Positions 1 to 63,135 are shown, counted from the stretch's first letter. The stretch is DNA of 64,000 bases from Leidyana gryllorum EB-2025a (GCA_048772705.1 JBLWGC010000104.1:682001-746000), one strand, 5' to 3'. A program made the numbers and translations. The notes: generated by a model not told the origin, from the sequence alone.

Positions 1-2087
1 TCGTCCAAAACCACTCGTCGCCAACGAATTTGGAACAGAGGACTTCGCGGATTTGAGCTCTCCGACAAAACGGTGCCATATGTTGTCAGAACGATATCGG
101 CCGTGTTACAGAGGTACGACAATGATTTGGAACGCTCAGTCGAGTAATAGTGATGCACCTTGAGATCGAGTCTGCAAAAAACAAAGGTGTTCAGATCTCT
201 GCCAAGAGAGCACAAACTCACTTTGCGTTACAATTGAAGTGACGCTCAATTTCAGACGCCCACTGTGCTATGAGACTAAGAGGCATTACGATTACTGTCC
301 CGCCGTTCCACTGATGATTCTGTTGGGAACTTCGCCTCCAGGCTCTACCCATAGTCTTGGCGTCAAAGTCCCGGGATATAACACTGAGCATTTCCACCGT
401 CTTGCCTAAGCCCATCTCATCAGCCAGAATTCCGCCAAAGCAGTCACTCTTCGCTTCTGGCGCGTCGAGTTGTAACTCGCCCGACATGTGATTCACAAAC
501 AAAGCGCGACTGGAGTCTGGGATCGTAAACTCGTCCCACATGGGATGGATTACTTCTTCGTGCCGCGGGGTACCGACGTCAGCCCAGATGTCTTCCTCTC
601 GTTTTTGCATCCAATTGAAGGCAATCAATTGATATCGCCTCAAAGATGTCCGGAATACCCGCGCGTCGGGTGACAACGGACAGTCTGTCGTCCCATCCTC
701 CATGGTGCCCGTGCCGAATACTTCGTTATTCTTTCTCTGCATCTCGTCCGCATCCAATTGTGCGTCGTCCGCCTCAGCCGGTTCTGGCAGATTTGACCCA
801 TTCGCGTTCTCGGAGTCCGGGTCATTGGCCAATTCGATCTCTTCTGGTGCGCCATCGGCCCCGCCGCCAGTCAATGACCATAAAACTGAGGCTTTCGTTG
901 GCTTCCATTTGAGCACCCGGCTGAACAGACCCATAATGGCATTGCGAAGGACAGCCTGTGCTTCTCCAATCAACAACTCGACAAACAGATGCTGTTGCAG
1001 AGCGAATGGACTCAGCCAAACATCTACCTGCAGCTTGAACTGACCACCCAGTTCCAGCCCCAGAGGAGGCGAATCCGTCAACTTGAAACTTATATGTGCC
1101 AACCGCAGGGCCAGCAACACCGATATAGTATTCGACACGTCCGCCTCAACCTTACCCAAGTCTCGACCTTTGTACATCACCCGAACAAACGCATTGCCCG
1201 AGAACGATCCAAAGGAGGAATTGCCAACAAACTCTGACTTTTTAACAGCGCCCCCAACGGCAAACCGCTTCGACGGTGCGATCAGTAGGAGAACACACGA
1301 CATGAGATCTTCGGGACGGTTGGAAACCAGTTGAGTAGCCACATAGCTTTCAAATGTGAGGCCCTTCAAGCCCCCAGTGCCATCTTCCAAGACTACCGCT
1401 CCTTTCTTCTCAACCGCACCTTTCTTAGGCGAGGCCGCTGTCCCCGTACTGAGGCGTCTCAAGCGGTCTGCGCAACGCTTCAACAAGTCCTTAGCCTCCA
1501 CTCCAATGAGAGGTTCAGGCTTCTCGGAGTCCAGCGTCACCCGCAGTAATGTACCCGTGGTGATGGCCGATCGCCCATTGATGCGCAAACTGCGTTTTGA
1601 CAGGAAACGGGGATAACTGATACTCATGTCGCACTCGAGTTGCTCCTACACGCCACAGTGACCACCCACCAAACGTAGACACACACGCGTTACCACTCAC
1701 CCCAGCCTGCCATGTCTGGACTCCTCGTGTGTTCGAGGCACATTCTAACTGTGATCGTCCCAAATAGAGCCACGATGTTAATATGGGGGCAGCCGCCACA
1801 TAAGTCTTGGATATCGGCTCTTCTGTTACTGGTAGCGGATGTGAAGGATTGAGTACTTTCGGCTGTTGTTTTGCTGGCTCAACACACCCCACATTTTCCA
1901 AAGCATCTGGCAGCAGTATACTCCATGGGGTTTCGCGATATATCTGTTCTATTATGTTTCATCCATCAACTATCACCGACCCACTGACCTCTGCCAAAGA
2001 GCGCCCAGTGCTACTCGCCAGCTGTTCCAAATGGGCCAGTATCACTGGGTCCAAAGTTCCTGCCCCCTCGCGATGTCGCTTGCCCAT
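1..2087 (-). CDS. RAD5: RAD5/HLTF-like SNF2-family helicase (5' part; continues off the left edge)
   Basis: ORF 218-1627 has LRRYQLIAF.WM, HPMWDEF and GGILADEMGLGKT (SNF2 motif I) and GGTVIVMPLSLIAQW.SEI (motif Ia). Splicing across ~172-221 gives DIVLTTYG. A HIRAN-like region lies upstream. Short upstream exons splice back to ATG 2087. Confidence 0.85.
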
Positions 2088-2351
2088 TCTTATTACATAA
2101 AAGAGTCAACCTGATTTTGGAAGATTCCAGCTACTTGGAGCCATAGCCATAGTCTGTCTGGTGTTTGACAAATCATCAGCAACAAACACGCAATTGACCA
2201 CTGCTTGAGCACTCTTGAAGTGCAAAGACCGCAATTGAGCTGGGCTCCATTGCGAGGAGCCTTTTGGGTCTCCCCGTGTCCCAACGTGTCCCAAAACCTT
2301 GAAGCTTTTGGGATTAACCTTTTGGGCTTTTGAAGTGAAAAAAATATTACC

Positions 2352-5300
2352 ATGTCAAGCTGGATTTGGGCTGAAGACGATAGCAACTTTGGACCCATTT
2401 TTGTCAACATACTAATCGGCTTAATCCCAGGAGCCTTTATTTTGCTGGTGGCGGCATGTGGTCGTCTCATCTGGAGGTCTCGATGGAGAGATCCACTCCC
2501 TGCCTTGGAAGAAGTTTATGGCGAGATGGGCCCAGTCAGACGGGTTCATGTGACTAATTGGATCACATGGCAAGAAGTGGTCACTGTGGTCTTTGCGCTT
2601 ACGACAGTACTGACCTTTCTGGTAACCATGCTATTGCTGCAGGTCGAGGGCCGCGAGGCTCCGACCGCGGACCGATGGCAATCACTTGGGGCTCTGCTGC
2701 TTTGTTTCGATGCGTGTCTCTTAATTGCATTCCACCGATCTTCGGTAAGCTTCTTCTATCTTCTTGGGGGTCAACTCGTATGTCTTCAGCGAATGTGTCC
2801 AAAACGAGGTGATAGCCGCAAGGTCGCGCTGCGGATTCTTCAGTTATTCTGGCTGTTGGTCATTGGAACGTCGGTCGTACGGCTGGTATGGGGAATCCGA
2901 GAGATCGATGTGCGGCCGTACAGTCGCTTCTGGTCGTCTCTCTGGAATACGATCTGGATTTTCGAGCCCTGTCTCCACATTCTTTGCGGAATAGTCGGTC
3001 TGATCATTTTCGGTCAGAGCAACTTTTCGAGGGACGATGTGTGGGGCACTTTGCGAGACACCTTCTTGGCTCCGGACATTCCTCGTCGGCCTGGCGAGGA
3101 TGACATTGAGGCCGTGAAACGACTGACAACGGCGGAGCCGCGGAAAGAGACTCCCGAGTTCTCCGCTGGTCTCTGGAAGACTTTGTCTTTCCAATGGCTG
3201 AACCCGCTGATCCGTCTCGGGAACAAACGTTTATTCGAGTACGACGACTTCTTTGATTGTATGCCGAACGAGCATCCGGCAATTCTGTTTGCCCGATTTG
3301 ACAAACTGTGGCGCGATCGAGTCAATAGTGGGAAGCCAATCAAACGGTGGAGTTTGGCAAATGTGGTGTACAAGTTCACTCTGCCTGAAACCAATTTCAG
3401 TGCGTTGTACAAGTTCACCTATGACACTCTTCTAATGATCGCTCCCCTGTTTTTGGATTTGGTCGTCACCTACCTCACCGACCGAGCAGAGGGGGAGCCT
3501 TTGGCCACCAGATGGCGTGGTCTCATTTATGTGGCTCTGATGGCCCTCAACGGGGTACTGCAGACTATTTTGCTGCACCAATACTTTCACAATCAATACC
3601 AATTGGGACTCCAAATTCGATCTGCTCTCTCTACAGCTGTGTATGAAAAGAGTTTGCGATTAGACAGAAGTGAGTTTCAAAGTTCCATCGTCTCTCTCGA
3701 CATTCAATTCTCTCTCATCAGCTAAAGCGGGTGCGACCACAGAGAATGACTTCTCCTCTGGAAAGGTTGTGAACCTGATGGCTGTTGATGCACAGAGATT
3801 GTCCGACTTGATGGCTTACATTCACATTTTCTGGAGCGCTCCCTATCAGATCATTGTGACCTGTGCTCTGTTGTGGTTCCAAATCCGCTGGGCGGCCTTC
3901 GCGGGCTTGGGTGTGATGCTCGTCAGTCTCCCGATCACCAAAATGATCATCGGCCGGGTTCGCCGACACTATGCGTCTCTCTTGCAAGAGAAGGATAAGC
4001 GTGTCAAGAAGACTACCGAGACGCTCAATGGTATCCGGGCGGTCAAATACTATGTTTGGGAGGAGGCTCGACTCAACACCATTAACGCCATCCGCGACGT
4101 CGAACTCGGTATCCTGAAACGAGTGCAGTCTATCAACATCATCAACAGAACATTGATGTACGGGATTCCCTCTTTGGTCGCCATTGCTTCGTTCGCTGTC
4201 TATGCTCTCGCCATGGGCGAACCTTTGACTCCCGCGACTGCCTTCACGGCATTGGCCCTTTTCAATAATCTAAGGTTTCCGTTGGTGGTTTTGCCAAACA
4301 TTGTCAATTCCATCACAGAGTCTGCCGTCACGGTGGAACGTATGCAGAGCTTTTTGCTCCTCCCCAGTCTACCACCCCAAGAGTTCACTCCCTACAAACC
4401 CGGCGAGCCCGCTTTGGATATCAAAGACTTGACGGTCCAAATTACTCCTTCCTCTCGGCTAATAGACAAACTCAACATCGCCGTCGACAAGAAAGAGCTC
4501 GTTGTCATCGTGGGACGTACCGGTGTCGGAAAGACGGCGTTCATTTCGACCCTCCTCGGCGACCTCGCGCCCGGCGACGGAGACATAAAGATCCGAGGCA
4601 CAATGTCTTACTGCTCTCAGACTGCGTGGATTCAGACCGGAACCGTTCAGGACAATATCATCTTTGGATCTCTCTTCGAAGAGGCAAAGTATAACCGCGT
4701 GGTGAAGGCCTGCGCTCTGGAATCAGATTTCCAGATCTTCCCGGACGGCGATCAGACTGAGATCGGAGAGCGCGGAATCAATCTGTCGGGCGGTCAGAAA
4801 CAGCGAATCGCGTTGGCGAGAGCAGTGTACCGCGACTCTGACATTTACATCTTCGACGACGTTCTCAGCGCCGTCGATACCCACGTCGCAGAGCACATTG
4901 TGCAGAACGTCTTTCTGGGACTCCTCAAAGACAAAGCCATTCTCCTCATTACTCACCGCTTCGAAGTGCTCGACCACGCCACCACCATTGTCTTCCTCCA
5001 CGACCGCATCGCTGAGCAGTTCAAGTCAGTCGCCGAGGCCTCTGCGAGCCCTCTCTTCAATGACTTGGCTGCCGAGAGTCTCCGGAAAATTGAGGAGGCG
5101 GTTGAAGCGGAGGCAGAAGAGCACGAACAACTGAGCCCCCGGCAAGAGAGGTCGGCCAGCAAAGACGCGAGCCCCACTTCCCGTACCCCAATGTCCCGCG
5201 GAAGTCATATGGATGGCAGTCCCGTTATGGGCAATCCTGTCGCGAACGCCCCTCGTACCGAACCCGGTATCCCGCCGGATCTGGTGGGATCCAGTTCGTT

Positions 5301-7411
5301 TCTCGACACTCGCAACATTGCGGGGGCGGCAGAAATTGATGAGGTCAGCGACGATGAGGGAATGGAGTCTCGGGGTCGCTCGGCCAGTAGAGCTCTGTCT
5401 GTGGCACGATCGCTTTCAGCTATCAGCAAGCGCACTCTGTCTCGTCGGAGATCCAAGGGATCGAGTGTGCAGGCCTCGCCGGTCGCTGTTGCCGAGACGG
5501 TCGTCGAAGAGGCACCAAAACGGAATCGGGTGGTTCTGATTGAAGACGAGAAGATGGCCATTGGCAAAGTGGGTCGGACGATCTATGCCAATTACTTTAG
5601 AGCGTGGGGTGGCGGGACTTGGTGGATGACCATTTGGGTTCTGCTCACTCTCGTGGTGTCTCAGACCGTCCAAGTCGGGAGCAACTTTTGGCTGTCTTTC
5701 TGGTCGGGTCGAAGTGATCCAGATGCTGAAGGGACTTACATCAGCAGTGGTTGGGGTGTTGGAGGATACACAATCTTCAACGCCATCAGTGTCTGCTTTG
5801 TGGCCCTGACAGGATGGCTACTGTTGATAGGAACCCTCCGAGCCTCGCGTCAGTTCCACTCGCGACTTCTCAACAGGACGATGAGAGCCAAACTCTTCTT
5901 TTTTGACTCCACTCCGGTCGGACGAATGCTCAGTCGCTTCGCCAAGGATATCAACAGTATCGATGATGCCCTACCGCAGACGTTGTACCAATACATGAAC
6001 AACTTGGTACAGATCATCGCTGTCATTGTGGTCATCGCTGTGGTGCTCCCCTGGATGATCATTGCCATTGTGCCTATGATCGGTCTATATCTCTTCATTC
6101 AGCGGTTCTACGTCAATGTCGTTCGACAATTCCGCCGCATAGAGAGTACTCTCCGAGCTCCCGTGATCAGCAACTTTAGCGAGAGCTTCGAGGGGGCAAC
6201 CGTTATCCGAGCCTTCCGAGAGATTGGCAGCTTCCGACTCCAACACATGGACAAACTCAACGCCAATCTGGTCTCTATCTACATCAGTAACGCAGCCAAC
6301 CGATGGCTGGCCGTTAGGCTCGAGAGTTTGGGTACTCTGCTCGTCGTCTGCACAGCTTTGGTTGCCGTTCTGACAGCTGGAACCCTTTCAGCCGCTTTGG
6401 GAGGTTTGGCACTAAGCTACGCTATCAGTTGTACCAACGGTCTCAACTGGCTGGTACGAATGTCAGGTGACCGTGAAGCCAATATTGTCGCTGTTGAGAG
6501 GCTGATGGAGTACGACCGAGATGACCACTGCCCACAGGAACAGTACGAAAGTCTTCTGCCTCCAGACACTGTGGAAACGGATCCGGGCCGCTTGGAGTTC
6601 CGCGGCATCTGTCTGCAGTACCGTCCTGGATTGCCCTACGCACTCAAGGATGTGTCTTTCGTCGTCAAGCCGGGCGAAAAGGTGAGCACACAATCACAAT
6701 CACATTCATTCATCCCATATCTTTTCTTTAGGTCGGCGTCGTCGGTCGCACAGGTGCCGGAAAGTCGAGTCTGTTGGTTGCTTTGTTACGGCTAACGACT
6801 CCGCAGGACGGCAACATCTTCCTCAACGGCGTGGAGACCACTCCAATGTCGGTATCTGAGCTACGTTCAAAGATTTCTATCATTCCTCAAGAATCGACTC
6901 TCTTCTCGGGAACTTTGCGGGATAATCTCGACCCGTTCAGTGAGAAGACTGACGCGCAGCTCTGGGAGACCTTACGACGAGCTTGCTTGCAAGAGTGGGC
7001 TAGCGGACTTGAGGAGGGTCTTCAGTACCCGATTGCCGAGAATGGCAGCAACTTGAGTAACGGTCAGAAACAGCTGCTGTGCTTGGCTCGAGTCCTCCTC
7101 AAGGATAACCGTTTCTTGCTACTGGATGAAGCGACGAGTGCAGTGGATCCTCAGACCGACGCACTCATTCAAACCACCATCCGAACAGAGTTTAGTCAAT
7201 GTACTATCTTGACTATAGCTCACCGGATCCGAACTGTTATCGATTACGATAAGGTAAGCGGACCGTTTCCACGCGCGGGCGTCTCATTCATTTGCGTTCC
7301 TTACAGATCATCGTTATGGCGGATGGCCGAGTGGCGGAGTTTGCCAGTCCTGCTGAACTCTTGGCTAACCCCGAATCGATCTTTGCCAGCATGGTGAAGG
7401 CTGCTGAGTGA
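2352..7411 (+). CDS. ABCC/MRP-type ABC transporter (N-terminal TM region, TMD1-NBD1-TMD2-NBD2)
   Basis: NBD1 has [16 protein letters not shown] and [11 protein letters not shown]2 has [12 protein letters not shown]2 has GRTGAGKS (after splicing), [15 protein letters not shown] and IAHR. Introns at ~2745-2789, 3670-3721, 6682-6731 and 7254-7307; stop TGA 7409-7411. Confidence 0.95.
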
Positions 7412-60553: not shown

Positions 60554-62083
60554 TCACATCAGGCGCAACACTTGTAGTGGAGCGTTAGTCTGAAGATGGA
60601 AACCGGTGACGGTCAAGACGCCACAGCGATTGACATCAAAAACGACTTTGAGTATGGGTTGATGGTCATCCGTGGCAGTCGGGCCGTTCACTCGATATAC
60701 CGCTGAGAGATTGTTCTCTCTGATTGCCGCGTTCTCGCCCTCTGATATCTGAAGTGTGATTCCCGGTTGCTGCTTGAGCATTGTACAGTATGTTCTGACG
60801 GACTGCGCTGGTAAGGGATCGTTATGAGCAAAGAGAACACAAGTCTGTGTGGGCGGGTTCTCGAATCCGAGTGAATAAGAGACCACGTCTCTGACAGAGA
60901 CGTCGTGGAATTTGGCGCCTTTCACACTGACGGTGTGAGCTGCGAATATTGCGGCTCCCACAGGTACAACATCAGATAAGTGAGGCGGTGTGTAGAGACG
61001 TTTGCCTCTAAAGAAGCTCTCCAAAAGTTGTCGTATCTTTGGAGTCTGAGAGGCACCGCCAAGGAGGACGATCTCGTCCACTTCGTCACCTTTGATCCGG
61101 CCGTCATACAGCACCTTCTCGATCATCTTGATGTATTTGTTAAAGTGTTCTGCGTTGAACTGATTGTACGTCGCCCGGGTGATGATGGTAGAAAAGTCGA
61201 TCTCCCCCTCTGTGAATTGGATTGTGCACCGCGTACTTGTGGACAGTTCCTTCTTGGCTTCCTCACACTCGTGACGCAAGCGAGCGTACGCCACAGGGTT
61301 GATTCGGATGTCAACTTGATTCTCTTCCAAATACTCATCAACGCAGTAGTCGACCAACCGATTAGTAAAGTCCTCTCCCCCGATGCCCGAGTCCCCTCCG
61401 ACGGCTCGCACTTCGACCTTTGAGTCCACCATATGCATCAGAGAAACAGCCGAGCTTCCTGCCCCAATATTGACGACCAATACCTTCTTGGGCTGGATAC
61501 GATTGCTCTTGTTCATCTGATATGCCAAACCTCCGGCCGTGGTATCGTTGATCAATCTCACATCTCGGAGCCCAGACAATCGACTGATGTTGATGGTGGC
61601 CTGTCGCTGGGCCTGGTTGAAGAAGGTGGGCACCACCAGCACCGACGCGTGTAACTTGTGCCCCAAAAACGCCTCTGCAGCGTCTCGAAGACGCTTCAAG
61701 ATCAAGGCTGAGAGAGTGACGGGATGAAAAGAGGTCAACTTGCCCTGAGCGACCGCCTGCACCAAGTTTTCACCATTGACCCCCATTCGGGTCTTGAAGG
61801 GTACCCGACTTCGATACTCCTTGGCAACCGGGTCAGTGAAACGACGTCCCAGTAGCCGTTTGAAGCAATATATAGTATTATCCGGGTCAGATGTCAGCCC
61901 CTCTTCGCCCAGCGCCCCCACGGTGTGCTGCTTGCCAACGAACCCCACCACAGATGGTAGCTCAAAGACGCCCTCATCCAGCGGGACGCGCTGAGCGACG
62001 CCATTCTTCACCACCGAAACCGACGAGAATCGGAGGCCAAGATCAAAAGCCGCAATCGTCTTACCCATAATCGTCTTACCCAT
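60554..62083 (-). CDS. Divergent Hsp70-family protein lacking lid/EEVD
   Basis: FDLG, PSVVGF, NTIYCFKRLLGR, VP.FFN.AQRQAT, GGEDF, CEEAK..LS and VLLGG...PKI. It ends after a partial substrate-binding beta domain. Confidence 0.88.
   Translation of the reverse strand: MGKTIMGKTIAAFDLGLRFSSVSVVKNGVAQRVPLDEGVFELPSVVGFVGKQHTVGALGEEGLTSDPDNTIYCFKRLLGRRFTDPVAKEYRSRVPFKTRMGVNGENLVQAVAQGKLTSFHPVTLSALILKRLRDAAEAFLGHKLHASVLVVPTFFNQAQRQATINISRLSGLRDVRLINDTTAGGLAYQMNKSNRIQPKKVLVVNIGAGSSAVSLMHMVDSKVEVRAVGGDSGIGGEDFTNRLVDYCVDEYLEENQVDIRINPVAYARLRHECEEAKKELSTSTRCTIQFTEGEIDFSTIITRATYNQFNAEHFNKYIKMIEKVLYDGRIKGDEVDEIVLLGGASQTPKIRQLLESFFRGKRLYTPPHLSDVVPVGAAIFAAHTVSVKGAKFHDVSVRDVVSYSLGFENPPTQTCVLFAHNDPLPAQSVRTYCTMLKQQPGITLQISEGENAAIRENNLSAVYRVNGPTATDDHQPILKVVFDVNRCGVLTVTGFHLQTNAPLQVLRLM
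62054..62083 (-). repeat. 15-bp tandem duplication of the start region (MGKTI MGKTI)
   Basis: AATCGTCTTACCCAT at 62054-62068 and 62069-62083. Confidence 0.9.
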
Positions 62084-62309: not shown

Positions 62310-63098
62310 TCAAAGGCTGCTGTCTTTGTGGGCAATCCAGGCTTCAAACAAGAATCCACGGAACCAATCGTAATAACGGGTGAATCCAGCATCTCTGAGC
62401 CTCTTCTCGTGGGTGATGATAGTGTCAGGTAGGAGCACCCCTTCCAAAGCCCGTTCTTTCAGCGCTATCTCCTCCTCCGAGTATCCATTGAGTGCCTTGA
62501 AGTTGTGATAGAGTTCGCGCAAATACGCCTGATCAGTCTCGTTCTCGGCTTTGCACTTCTCAGCCAGGATCAGTATGCCGCCAGGAAGCAGAACATCGTA
62601 TATGTGCGCGATCAAGGCGTCGCGACTTGAGGGGTCCAGGAACTGCAGAGTGAACGTACACAATACCATGTGACAGGGCTTCAGCCGCATCTTGGTGATG
62701 TCTCCGAGTATCACCTCGGTCTCGGCGTTGGTAACTTGGGCCTGCAAATACTTGGTGGCTGCTTGAACCATCGGTTCAGACGAGTCGATGGCAACGATCT
62801 GAGACCCCGCATTAATGGGGAGGCCTTTGCTGGCGGCGATGGCGGCGTGTCCCCAAGCAGCTCCCAAATCATATATCAGCAGCTTCTCCTCGGGTTGGAC
62901 TTGGAGGGTGCGGGTAATGGCAGTAATTCCGTCCAAGAGCAGTTCGTAGCCCGGAATCGAGCGCCTGATCATGTCATCAAAAACCTCGGAGACTGTAGCC
63001 CCAAACTCGAATGGGAAGGGGGGCTCAACGCCCTTGAAGACCTCATCTTTCTGTCGGAGGGGGAGAGAACCTGCGTCAGATGCGAGAGGTTTAGTCAT
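62310..63098 (-). CDS. cmoA: Bacterial-type carboxy-SAM synthase (CmoA) homolog, intronless
   Basis: F...V..VFDDMIRRSIPGY, YDLG, IAID.S..M, GDI, FTLQFL, IY..L.PGG.L.L.EK, H.FK..NGYS..EI..K...LE.V and H..RL..AGF are colinear with bacterial CmoA. Confidence 0.88.
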   Translation of the reverse strand: MTKPLASDAGSLPLRQKDEVFKGVEPPFPFEFGATVSEVFDDMIRRSIPGYELLLDGITAITRTLQVQPEEKLLIYDLGAAWGHAAIAASKGLPINAGSQIVAIDSSEPMVQAATKYLQAQVTNAETEVILGDITKMRLKPCHMVLCTFTLQFLDPSSRDALIAHIYDVLLPGGILILAEKCKAENETDQAYLRELYHNFKALNGYSEEEIALKERALEGVLLPDTIITHEKRLRDAGFTRYYDWFRGFLFEAWIAHKDSSL

Positions 63099-63135
63099 GA
63101 GGAATCTTTTCTACTCTGCCCAGTCGCGGTCGCCC

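Follow-up and report, generated by a model that had tools for sequence, protein, structure and literature searches.

The Cx-SAM synthase CmoA has long been known as a bacterial enzyme. Byrne et al. found CmoA homologues in bacteria only and regarded Arg199 as the mark of Cx-SAM-binding proteins (PMC3663124), and Herbert et al. described CmoA as bacterial as well (PMC7496830). More recently, CmoA also became known from phages (PMC12783734), where SpCmoA of Synechococcus phage S-B43 is a biochemically validated Cx-SAM synthase supplying the DNA carboxymethyltransferase CmoX. CysG and BelI, which turned up as the nearest structural relatives outside of CmoA, are SAM- and Ca2+-dependent carboxyl O-methyltransferases acting on alkylmalates (PMC11408123). 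A full-text literature search, with incomplete coverage, yielded no report of a eukaryotic CmoA, nor of CmoA among the gene transfers into protists.

The window analyzed here is a stretch of 64,000 nucleotides from the assembly of the protist Leidyana gryllorum EB-2025a (C104:682001-746000). It carries a CmoA-family coding sequence, the features of which are compiled in Table 1. Aligned over the full length with the CmoA proteins of E. coli and H. influenzae (4GEK, 4IWN, 1IM8), the protist protein showed 38-40% identity and the same Rossmann-plus-lid fold. It differed from them by the exchanges C65A, S66A, N132T and R199E (E. coli numbering), by an Arg at position 200 and by approximately 13 extra N-terminal residues, and the gene resides in a eukaryote in whose assembly cmoB, trhP, trhO and a shikimate pathway were not found. 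New here are the host domain of a known enzyme family and the orphan context, not a new chemistry.

Table 1. Features of the CmoA-family locus, with positions counted from the first nucleotide of the window.
Feature	Position	Strand	Basis
CmoA-family coding sequence, intact, intronless, 262 aa	62310..63098 (stop codon included)	(-)	ORF listing, TIGR00740, PDB, AlphaFold2
In-frame TAG, 15 nt 5' of the ATG	63111..63113	(-)	direct sequence reading, alignment
Codons G79-A80-A81, corresponding to E. coli G64-C65-S66, motif I	62856..62864	(-)	alignments
Codon T148, corresponding to E. coli N132 (cofactor methionine contact), now Thr	62655..62657	(-)	alignments
Codons K214-E215-R216, corresponding to E. 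coli K198-R199-S200	62451..62459	(-)	alignments; model secondary structure

An earlier note on this DNA, made from the sequence alone, had described a full-length CmoA-like open reading frame, and this was borne out. The frame is uninterrupted, and the in-frame TAG upstream of the ATG fixes the start codon and with it the N-terminal extension compared to bacterial CmoA. The NCBIfam CmoA equivalog model TIGR00740 matched the whole length of the protein (model positions 15-239 of 239) with 187.5 bits at a cut-off of 193.3. Using HMMER, the solved CmoA/YecO structures 1IM8 (E = 2.7e-45), 4GEK (E = 5.9e-44) and 4IWN were all found, in a range of E values from 1e-43 to 1e-45. The score slightly below the TIGR00740 cut-off would not be a sign of lost function. 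The validated SpCmoA (115.6 bits) and the cmoB-coupled family member P0117 (163.7 bits) score lower than the protist protein and likewise stay below the cut-off, which can therefore not be taken as a functional boundary. An AlphaFold2 model of high confidence was obtained (pLDDT 94.1, pTM 0.91), showing the class I Rossmann methyltransferase core together with the CmoA-specific helical lid. In a structure search with this model the top six PDB matches were all CmoA/YecO chains (target-normalised TM 0.91-0.94, rmsd 2.1-2.6 A), with 4GEK as the best one (target-normalised TM 0.93, rmsd 2.1 A). Integrity, family membership and fold of the gene product were established by these results, and the gene is present as a single copy in the protist genome. 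The lack of introns had been pointed out as a peculiarity among spliced genes. The gene indeed contains no intron; this is not unusual at the locus, however, as the Hsp70-like gene and the MFS transporter gene nearby likewise consist of one open reading frame each.

The active site was inspected by aligning the protein to E. coli CmoA with HMMER. The relevant segments read YDLGCSLGAA versus YDLGAAWGHA, VVLNFTLQF versus VLCTFTLQF, and EISQKRSMLEN versus EIALKERALEG (E. coli first). The equivalences for Arg199, N132 and GCS64-66 given in the earlier note were thereby confirmed residue by residue. The canonical residue forming the salt bridge to the Cx-SAM carboxylate is not present: Glu (E215, codon 62454-62456) takes the place of the carboxylate-binding Arg, and the next residue, position 200, is an Arg located inside helix 208-218 of the model. 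In motif I, the double exchange C65A and S66A removes the Ser which forms hydrogen bonds to the ribose. In order to judge these changes against the background of the family, 116 family members were aligned, and 53 alignment columns with at least 80% conservation were obtained. The protist protein keeps 49 of the 53, the departures being exactly the four exchanges mentioned above; the median number of departures in the family is also four. Among the cofactor contacts seen in the crystal, Y39, D62, G64, D89, D117 and F137 are kept, as is E164, while Ala and Thr stand at the positions of S66 and N132, respectively. Three of the four departures are on the crystallographic list of cofactor contacts (Byrne et al., PMC3663124), with a hypergeometric p-value of 0.013. 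K214 (the invariant K198), R46 (the invariant R34) and all remaining CmoA-specific conserved residues of the lid are retained. By these alignments, the description as a targeted change of the pocket on an otherwise intact enzyme is correct, and the claim of the earlier note that the rest of the fold is intact around the changed pocket held up in the 49 conserved columns.

All approaches to the ancestry of the gene led to bacteria. A word search returned 84 matches with 27-50% identity, in which all named ones were bacterial CmoA proteins and none came from eukaryote-specific sources, although the same database contains such sources. The neighbour clusters in the Atlas were all bacterial CmoA, mostly of Pseudomonadota. 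When 1.84 billion representatives were searched exhaustively, only P0001 (51%) and P0085 (46%) exceeded approximately 45% identity. When an alignment of the protist protein and P0001 was scanned against GTDB species genomes, JGI metagenomes and IMG/VR, none of the matches was more than 38% identical and none was viral. Every relative that could be placed is bacterial or phage. A maximum-likelihood tree of 88 sequences placed P0001 as the sister of the protist protein (99% SH-aLRT), with the pair nested inside bacterial CmoA on a shared stem branch of 0.73 changes per site, compared to a median internal branch of 0.11. The nearest tree neighbour of the pair, and the nearest named one, was the CmoA cluster of Cardiobacterium (Cardiobacterium valvarum), with 79% support.

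P0001, an uncharacterised CmoA-like protein, shares all four pocket substitutions with the protist protein, and both also have AEKC instead of SEK, EEE instead of ELE and LLF instead of FNF. It differs from the protist protein by four further departures from the family consensus and by its location on a compact bacterial contig. This metagenomic contig (Logan ERR10900103_10977, 1-6113) encodes a bacterial-type ProRS scoring above its equivalog cut-off and a PlsB-like acyltransferase, with the stop codon of the latter abutting the start codon of P0001. The 366 bp 3' of P0001 cover the first 97 aa of a gene without a family match and do not include cmoB. No known protein exceeds 48% identity to the ProRS, its named best matches are nearly all from Gammaproteobacteria, and no match to the editing domain PF04073 is on record for it. 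P0001 is bacterial, judged from its genomic surroundings. The low identity of the ProRS argues for a deep-branching and essentially unsampled lineage on the donor side, which is known from one 8 kb contig and for which ProRS gives a coarse placement only. This bacterium could belong to an uncultured lineage associated with protists. Profile searches and phylogeny lend good support to a horizontal transfer between bacteria and the protist, as had been proposed in the earlier note, and no direction other than from bacteria to protist is reasonable; the transfer is genuine and looks ancient. As the bacterial sister carries all four substitutions, the pocket changes predate the transfer, and the idea that they represent a eukaryotic innovation is not supported.

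Similar pockets were found elsewhere in the family. Arg199 is missing from approximately 12% of the 233 family members and representatives examined, including the validated enzyme of phage S-B43. Where it is lost, an Arg at the following position is 14-fold enriched (p = 7e-5), and the same state is coupled to the loss of N132 (p = 2e-5). This is the pattern that a recurrent, compensated alternative architecture would leave behind. SpCmoA of phage S-B43 has Leu at position 132 and shows K-E-K at positions 198-200, where the protist protein shows K-E-R; the helices of the two align here without insertion or deletion. The related protein of phage S-CRM01 has K-E-K and Ile at 132. SpCmoA further resembles the protist protein in the "EEI" start of the helix and in having no CmoB partner. 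It differs in being only approximately 30% identical and not close within the family, in keeping GCS in motif I, and in having its partners CmoX and CmoY encoded next door, while the protist is without a CmoX-type enzyme. Among cellular bacteria, the CmoA of Cardiobacterium combines S66A with N132T, and CmoB is encoded elsewhere in the same genome (356 bits). The CmoA of Candidatus Riesia, a reduced genome of 0.57 Mb, combines S66A with K-E-R and lies directly 5' of cmoB. Neither of the two has all four exchanges, and unlike the protist both genomes keep CmoB. For both P0117 (K-H-R, Tyr132) and P0159 (K-A-R, His132), the next gene is a cmoB that overlaps the stop codon. For P0203 (K-E-A) and P0227 (K-E-T), no adjoining cmoB was seen in the contexts examined. 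An alternative pocket, in which position 199 is occupied by Glu or a small residue, position 200 is basic and Asn132 is missing, recurs independently.

As SpCmoA is validated, the combination of Glu199, a basic residue at 200 and a position 132 other than Asn is the pocket of a proven Cx-SAM synthase. Together with the approximately 12% of the family lacking Arg199, this means that Arg199 cannot define Cx-SAM activity. The assumption of Arg199 as a hallmark is corrected by these data, and annotation rules for CmoA as well as enzyme engineering should allow for the alternative pocket. The equation of a rewired pocket with a new chemistry, as suggested in the earlier note, found no support in this comparison, each of the changes being found in bacteria retaining CmoB or in the validated SpCmoA. 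No single characterised CmoA has all four substitutions together.

The known Cx-SAM pathways are CmoA/CmoB, leading to cmo5U in tRNA, TglE/TglF, and CmoA/CmoX in phages. For the metabolic context in the protist, the entire 15.5 Mb assembly was searched in all six frames. The same searches matched 7 to 14 of 14 control genomes, and other searches of the assembly found intron-split genes, indicating that the method works on this genome. The absence of cmoB from the window, already stated in the earlier note, was found to extend to the whole assembly: no CmoB or TglF-type enzyme was detected in either, and the best match to TIGR00452 reached 43.5 bits at a cut-off of 275. Two weak matches to PF08003 were rejected as CmoB candidates, one showing PRMT-type motifs and the other being a generic small methyltransferase. 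The search for trhP, trhO and chorismate mutase proposed in the same note gave no match to any of them in the assembly, neither to TrhP (peptidase U32) and TrhO (UPF0176_N), the suppliers of ho5U, nor to the AroQ-type (CM_2) chorismate mutase, and chorismate synthase and EPSP synthase were not matched either. With no shikimate-pathway enzymes detected, no endogenous prephenate is expected. As an aside, a protist that appears to be without this pathway should depend on external aromatic amino acids.

CmoX and the engineered M.MpeI N374K owe their selectivity for Cx-SAM to a basic residue in motif X, which is an Arg in CmoX. Two paralogues of the Dnmt2/TRDMT1 type are encoded on the same contig as the CmoA-family gene (C104:802602-803690 and C104:465524-466700), the latter being more divergent and split into several ORF pieces. 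Both possess the motifs PPCQ, ENV and (C/T)FT..GYG and an ordinary motif X "LIGNS". They were rejected as CmoX-like partners, as both keep the Asn of motif X instead of the Arg of CmoX. Overall, the protist appears to be without an endogenous source of prephenate and without a known user of Cx-SAM, for which the CmoB, TglF and CmoX types were searched. The ordinary methyltransferases COMT and CNMT are able to use Cx-SAM with low efficiency (PMC7496830), which makes an unrecognised acceptor conceivable. The real puzzle of this locus is consequently the missing partner enzyme and the missing co-substrate pathway, rather than the unusual residues of the active site.

Our favoured explanation is that the open reading frame encodes a horizontally acquired bacterial member of the CmoA family, now resident in the protist chromosome. 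The source would be a rare, deep-branching gammaproteobacterium-like lineage, or an ancestor shared with it, represented so far only by P0001 and already equipped with the four pocket substitutions. The enzyme would most likely still convert SAM and prephenate to carboxy-SAM and phenylpyruvate, with the positive charge for the carboxylate supplied either by Arg216, which directly follows the canonical position of Arg199, or by the invariant Lys214. In the protist it would be an orphan. Its product would have to feed a carboxymethyl acceptor yet to be recognised, and the cell would have to obtain the co-substrate chorismate or prephenate externally, for instance from bacteria that it ingests or lives beside. 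That the protist protein is still a Cx-SAM synthase with an inherited pocket variant is in our view the most likely of the readings, at about even odds. The expression of the protist gene, its maintenance by purifying selection, its continued activity as a Cx-SAM synthase and any physiological role are inferred. An intact, constrained-looking CmoA in a eukaryote without the co-substrate pathway raises the question of whether carboxy-SAM occurs in eukaryotic cells, and which enzyme uses it. A eukaryotic Cx-SAM reaction with an acceptor outside the CmoB, TglF, MccB and CmoX types, or a protist/P0001 clade making or using a different SAM derivative, we regard as unlikely. If true, either case would represent the first Cx-SAM-type chemistry in a eukaryote, with the co-substrate taken from bacteria.

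The most serious competitor is a change of function in the clade of the protist protein and P0001, which would have kept the CmoA scaffold and lid, would bind SAM instead of Cx-SAM, and would act as an ordinary methyltransferase or perform another SAM chemistry, with a small carboxylate-bearing substrate held by Arg216. We consider this plausible but less likely. It is consistent with the position of the only four altered conserved residues in or beside the cofactor site, three of them crystal contacts with the p-value given above, with the long stem branch of the clade and with the lack of cmoB in the short segment 3' of P0001. It would also explain how the gene persists in the protist without CmoB or prephenate. 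Some further support comes from CysG and BelI (9FCD, 9FCE), the next-best structural relatives of the model (target-normalised TM 0.85-0.88, identity 21-22%), the residue numbering of which was set via mutant chains. They are the nearest structures outside of CmoA, and their residues at positions 65, 199 and 200 match those of the protist protein: in CysG, R184-E185-R186 stands in place of K-E-R, motif I contains GAG, and the position of N132 is occupied by Ala. In BelI the equivalent Arg187 binds the C4-carboxylate of the substrate according to docking (PMC11408123). However, the protist protein has no counterpart of the His-His-Asp metal motif that is essential for CysG and BelI: H121, H122 and D190 of CysG, the ligands of the catalytic divalent metal, align with its Q152, F153 and G220. 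Moreover, each of the four substitutions occurs in CmoA proteins accompanied by CmoB or in proven Cx-SAM synthases, and the conservation of the CmoA lid and of the invariant K198 and R34 would be unexpected for an enzyme with an altered second substrate.

Distinctly less probable, in our view, is a functionless passenger, a transferred gene for which the pathway context was never present in the new host and which is intact by chance, under very weak selection, or unexpressed. The lack of a partner enzyme, of a substrate pathway and of any orthologue in other eukaryotes in the databases searched would agree with such a fate. It does not fit well with a full-length reading frame which keeps 49 of 53 conserved positions, and so departs from them no more often than the family median, despite only 51% identity to the closest relative. 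The codon usage, which was among the best host fits of the genes tested (-1.14 log-likelihood per codon versus the local protist genes), also speaks against it. Long neutral drift in particular is argued against by the combination of both, as a drift reshaping the codon usage should also damage conserved sites.

The favoured reading of an acquired and resident gene is in line with its genomic surroundings. The gene lies approximately 744 kb into a contig of 1.27 Mb, with the nearest genes at a distance of 226 bp on one side and approximately 1 kb on the other. The GC content is flat across the window, the codon usage is closer to that of the protist genes than to that of the P0001 bacterium, and the flanks contain no repeats and no mobile-element remnants. 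An MFS transporter gene and a histone H2A gene split by a short intron are found within a few kb upstream. Integration into a eukaryotic chromosome is supported by these observations, and a bacterial contamination or an assembly chimera, for which the purely bacterial nature of the closest relatives could be quoted, is hardly credible in view of this mid-contig position, the close flanking genes, the uniform GC content, the host-like codon usage and the clean flanks, and matches no known contaminant, 51% being the highest identity reached by any database sequence.

Some minor observations concern the neighbourhood of the gene. A co-transfer with the adjoining Hsp70-like gene was considered and found unsupported, as the score of the latter is far below all DnaK and HscA cut-offs; its best matches (at most 36% identity) are a mix of eukaryotes and bacteria. 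The match of the Hsp70-like gene to PF00012 is confined to profile positions 4-489 of 599, and a perfect 15-nt tandem duplication at the start of its reading frame (62054-62083) leads to the N-terminus MGKTIMGKTI. A Blastocystis-type TGTTTGTT signal was found with 8 matches versus 2.3 expected; the matches were clustered and not located at gene ends, and the signal was not relied on. The histone H2A gene (C104:747814-748424), just past the end of the window, is divergent and split by an intron of approximately 40 nt; the N-terminus of its product is unusual and the C-terminal tail is acidic.
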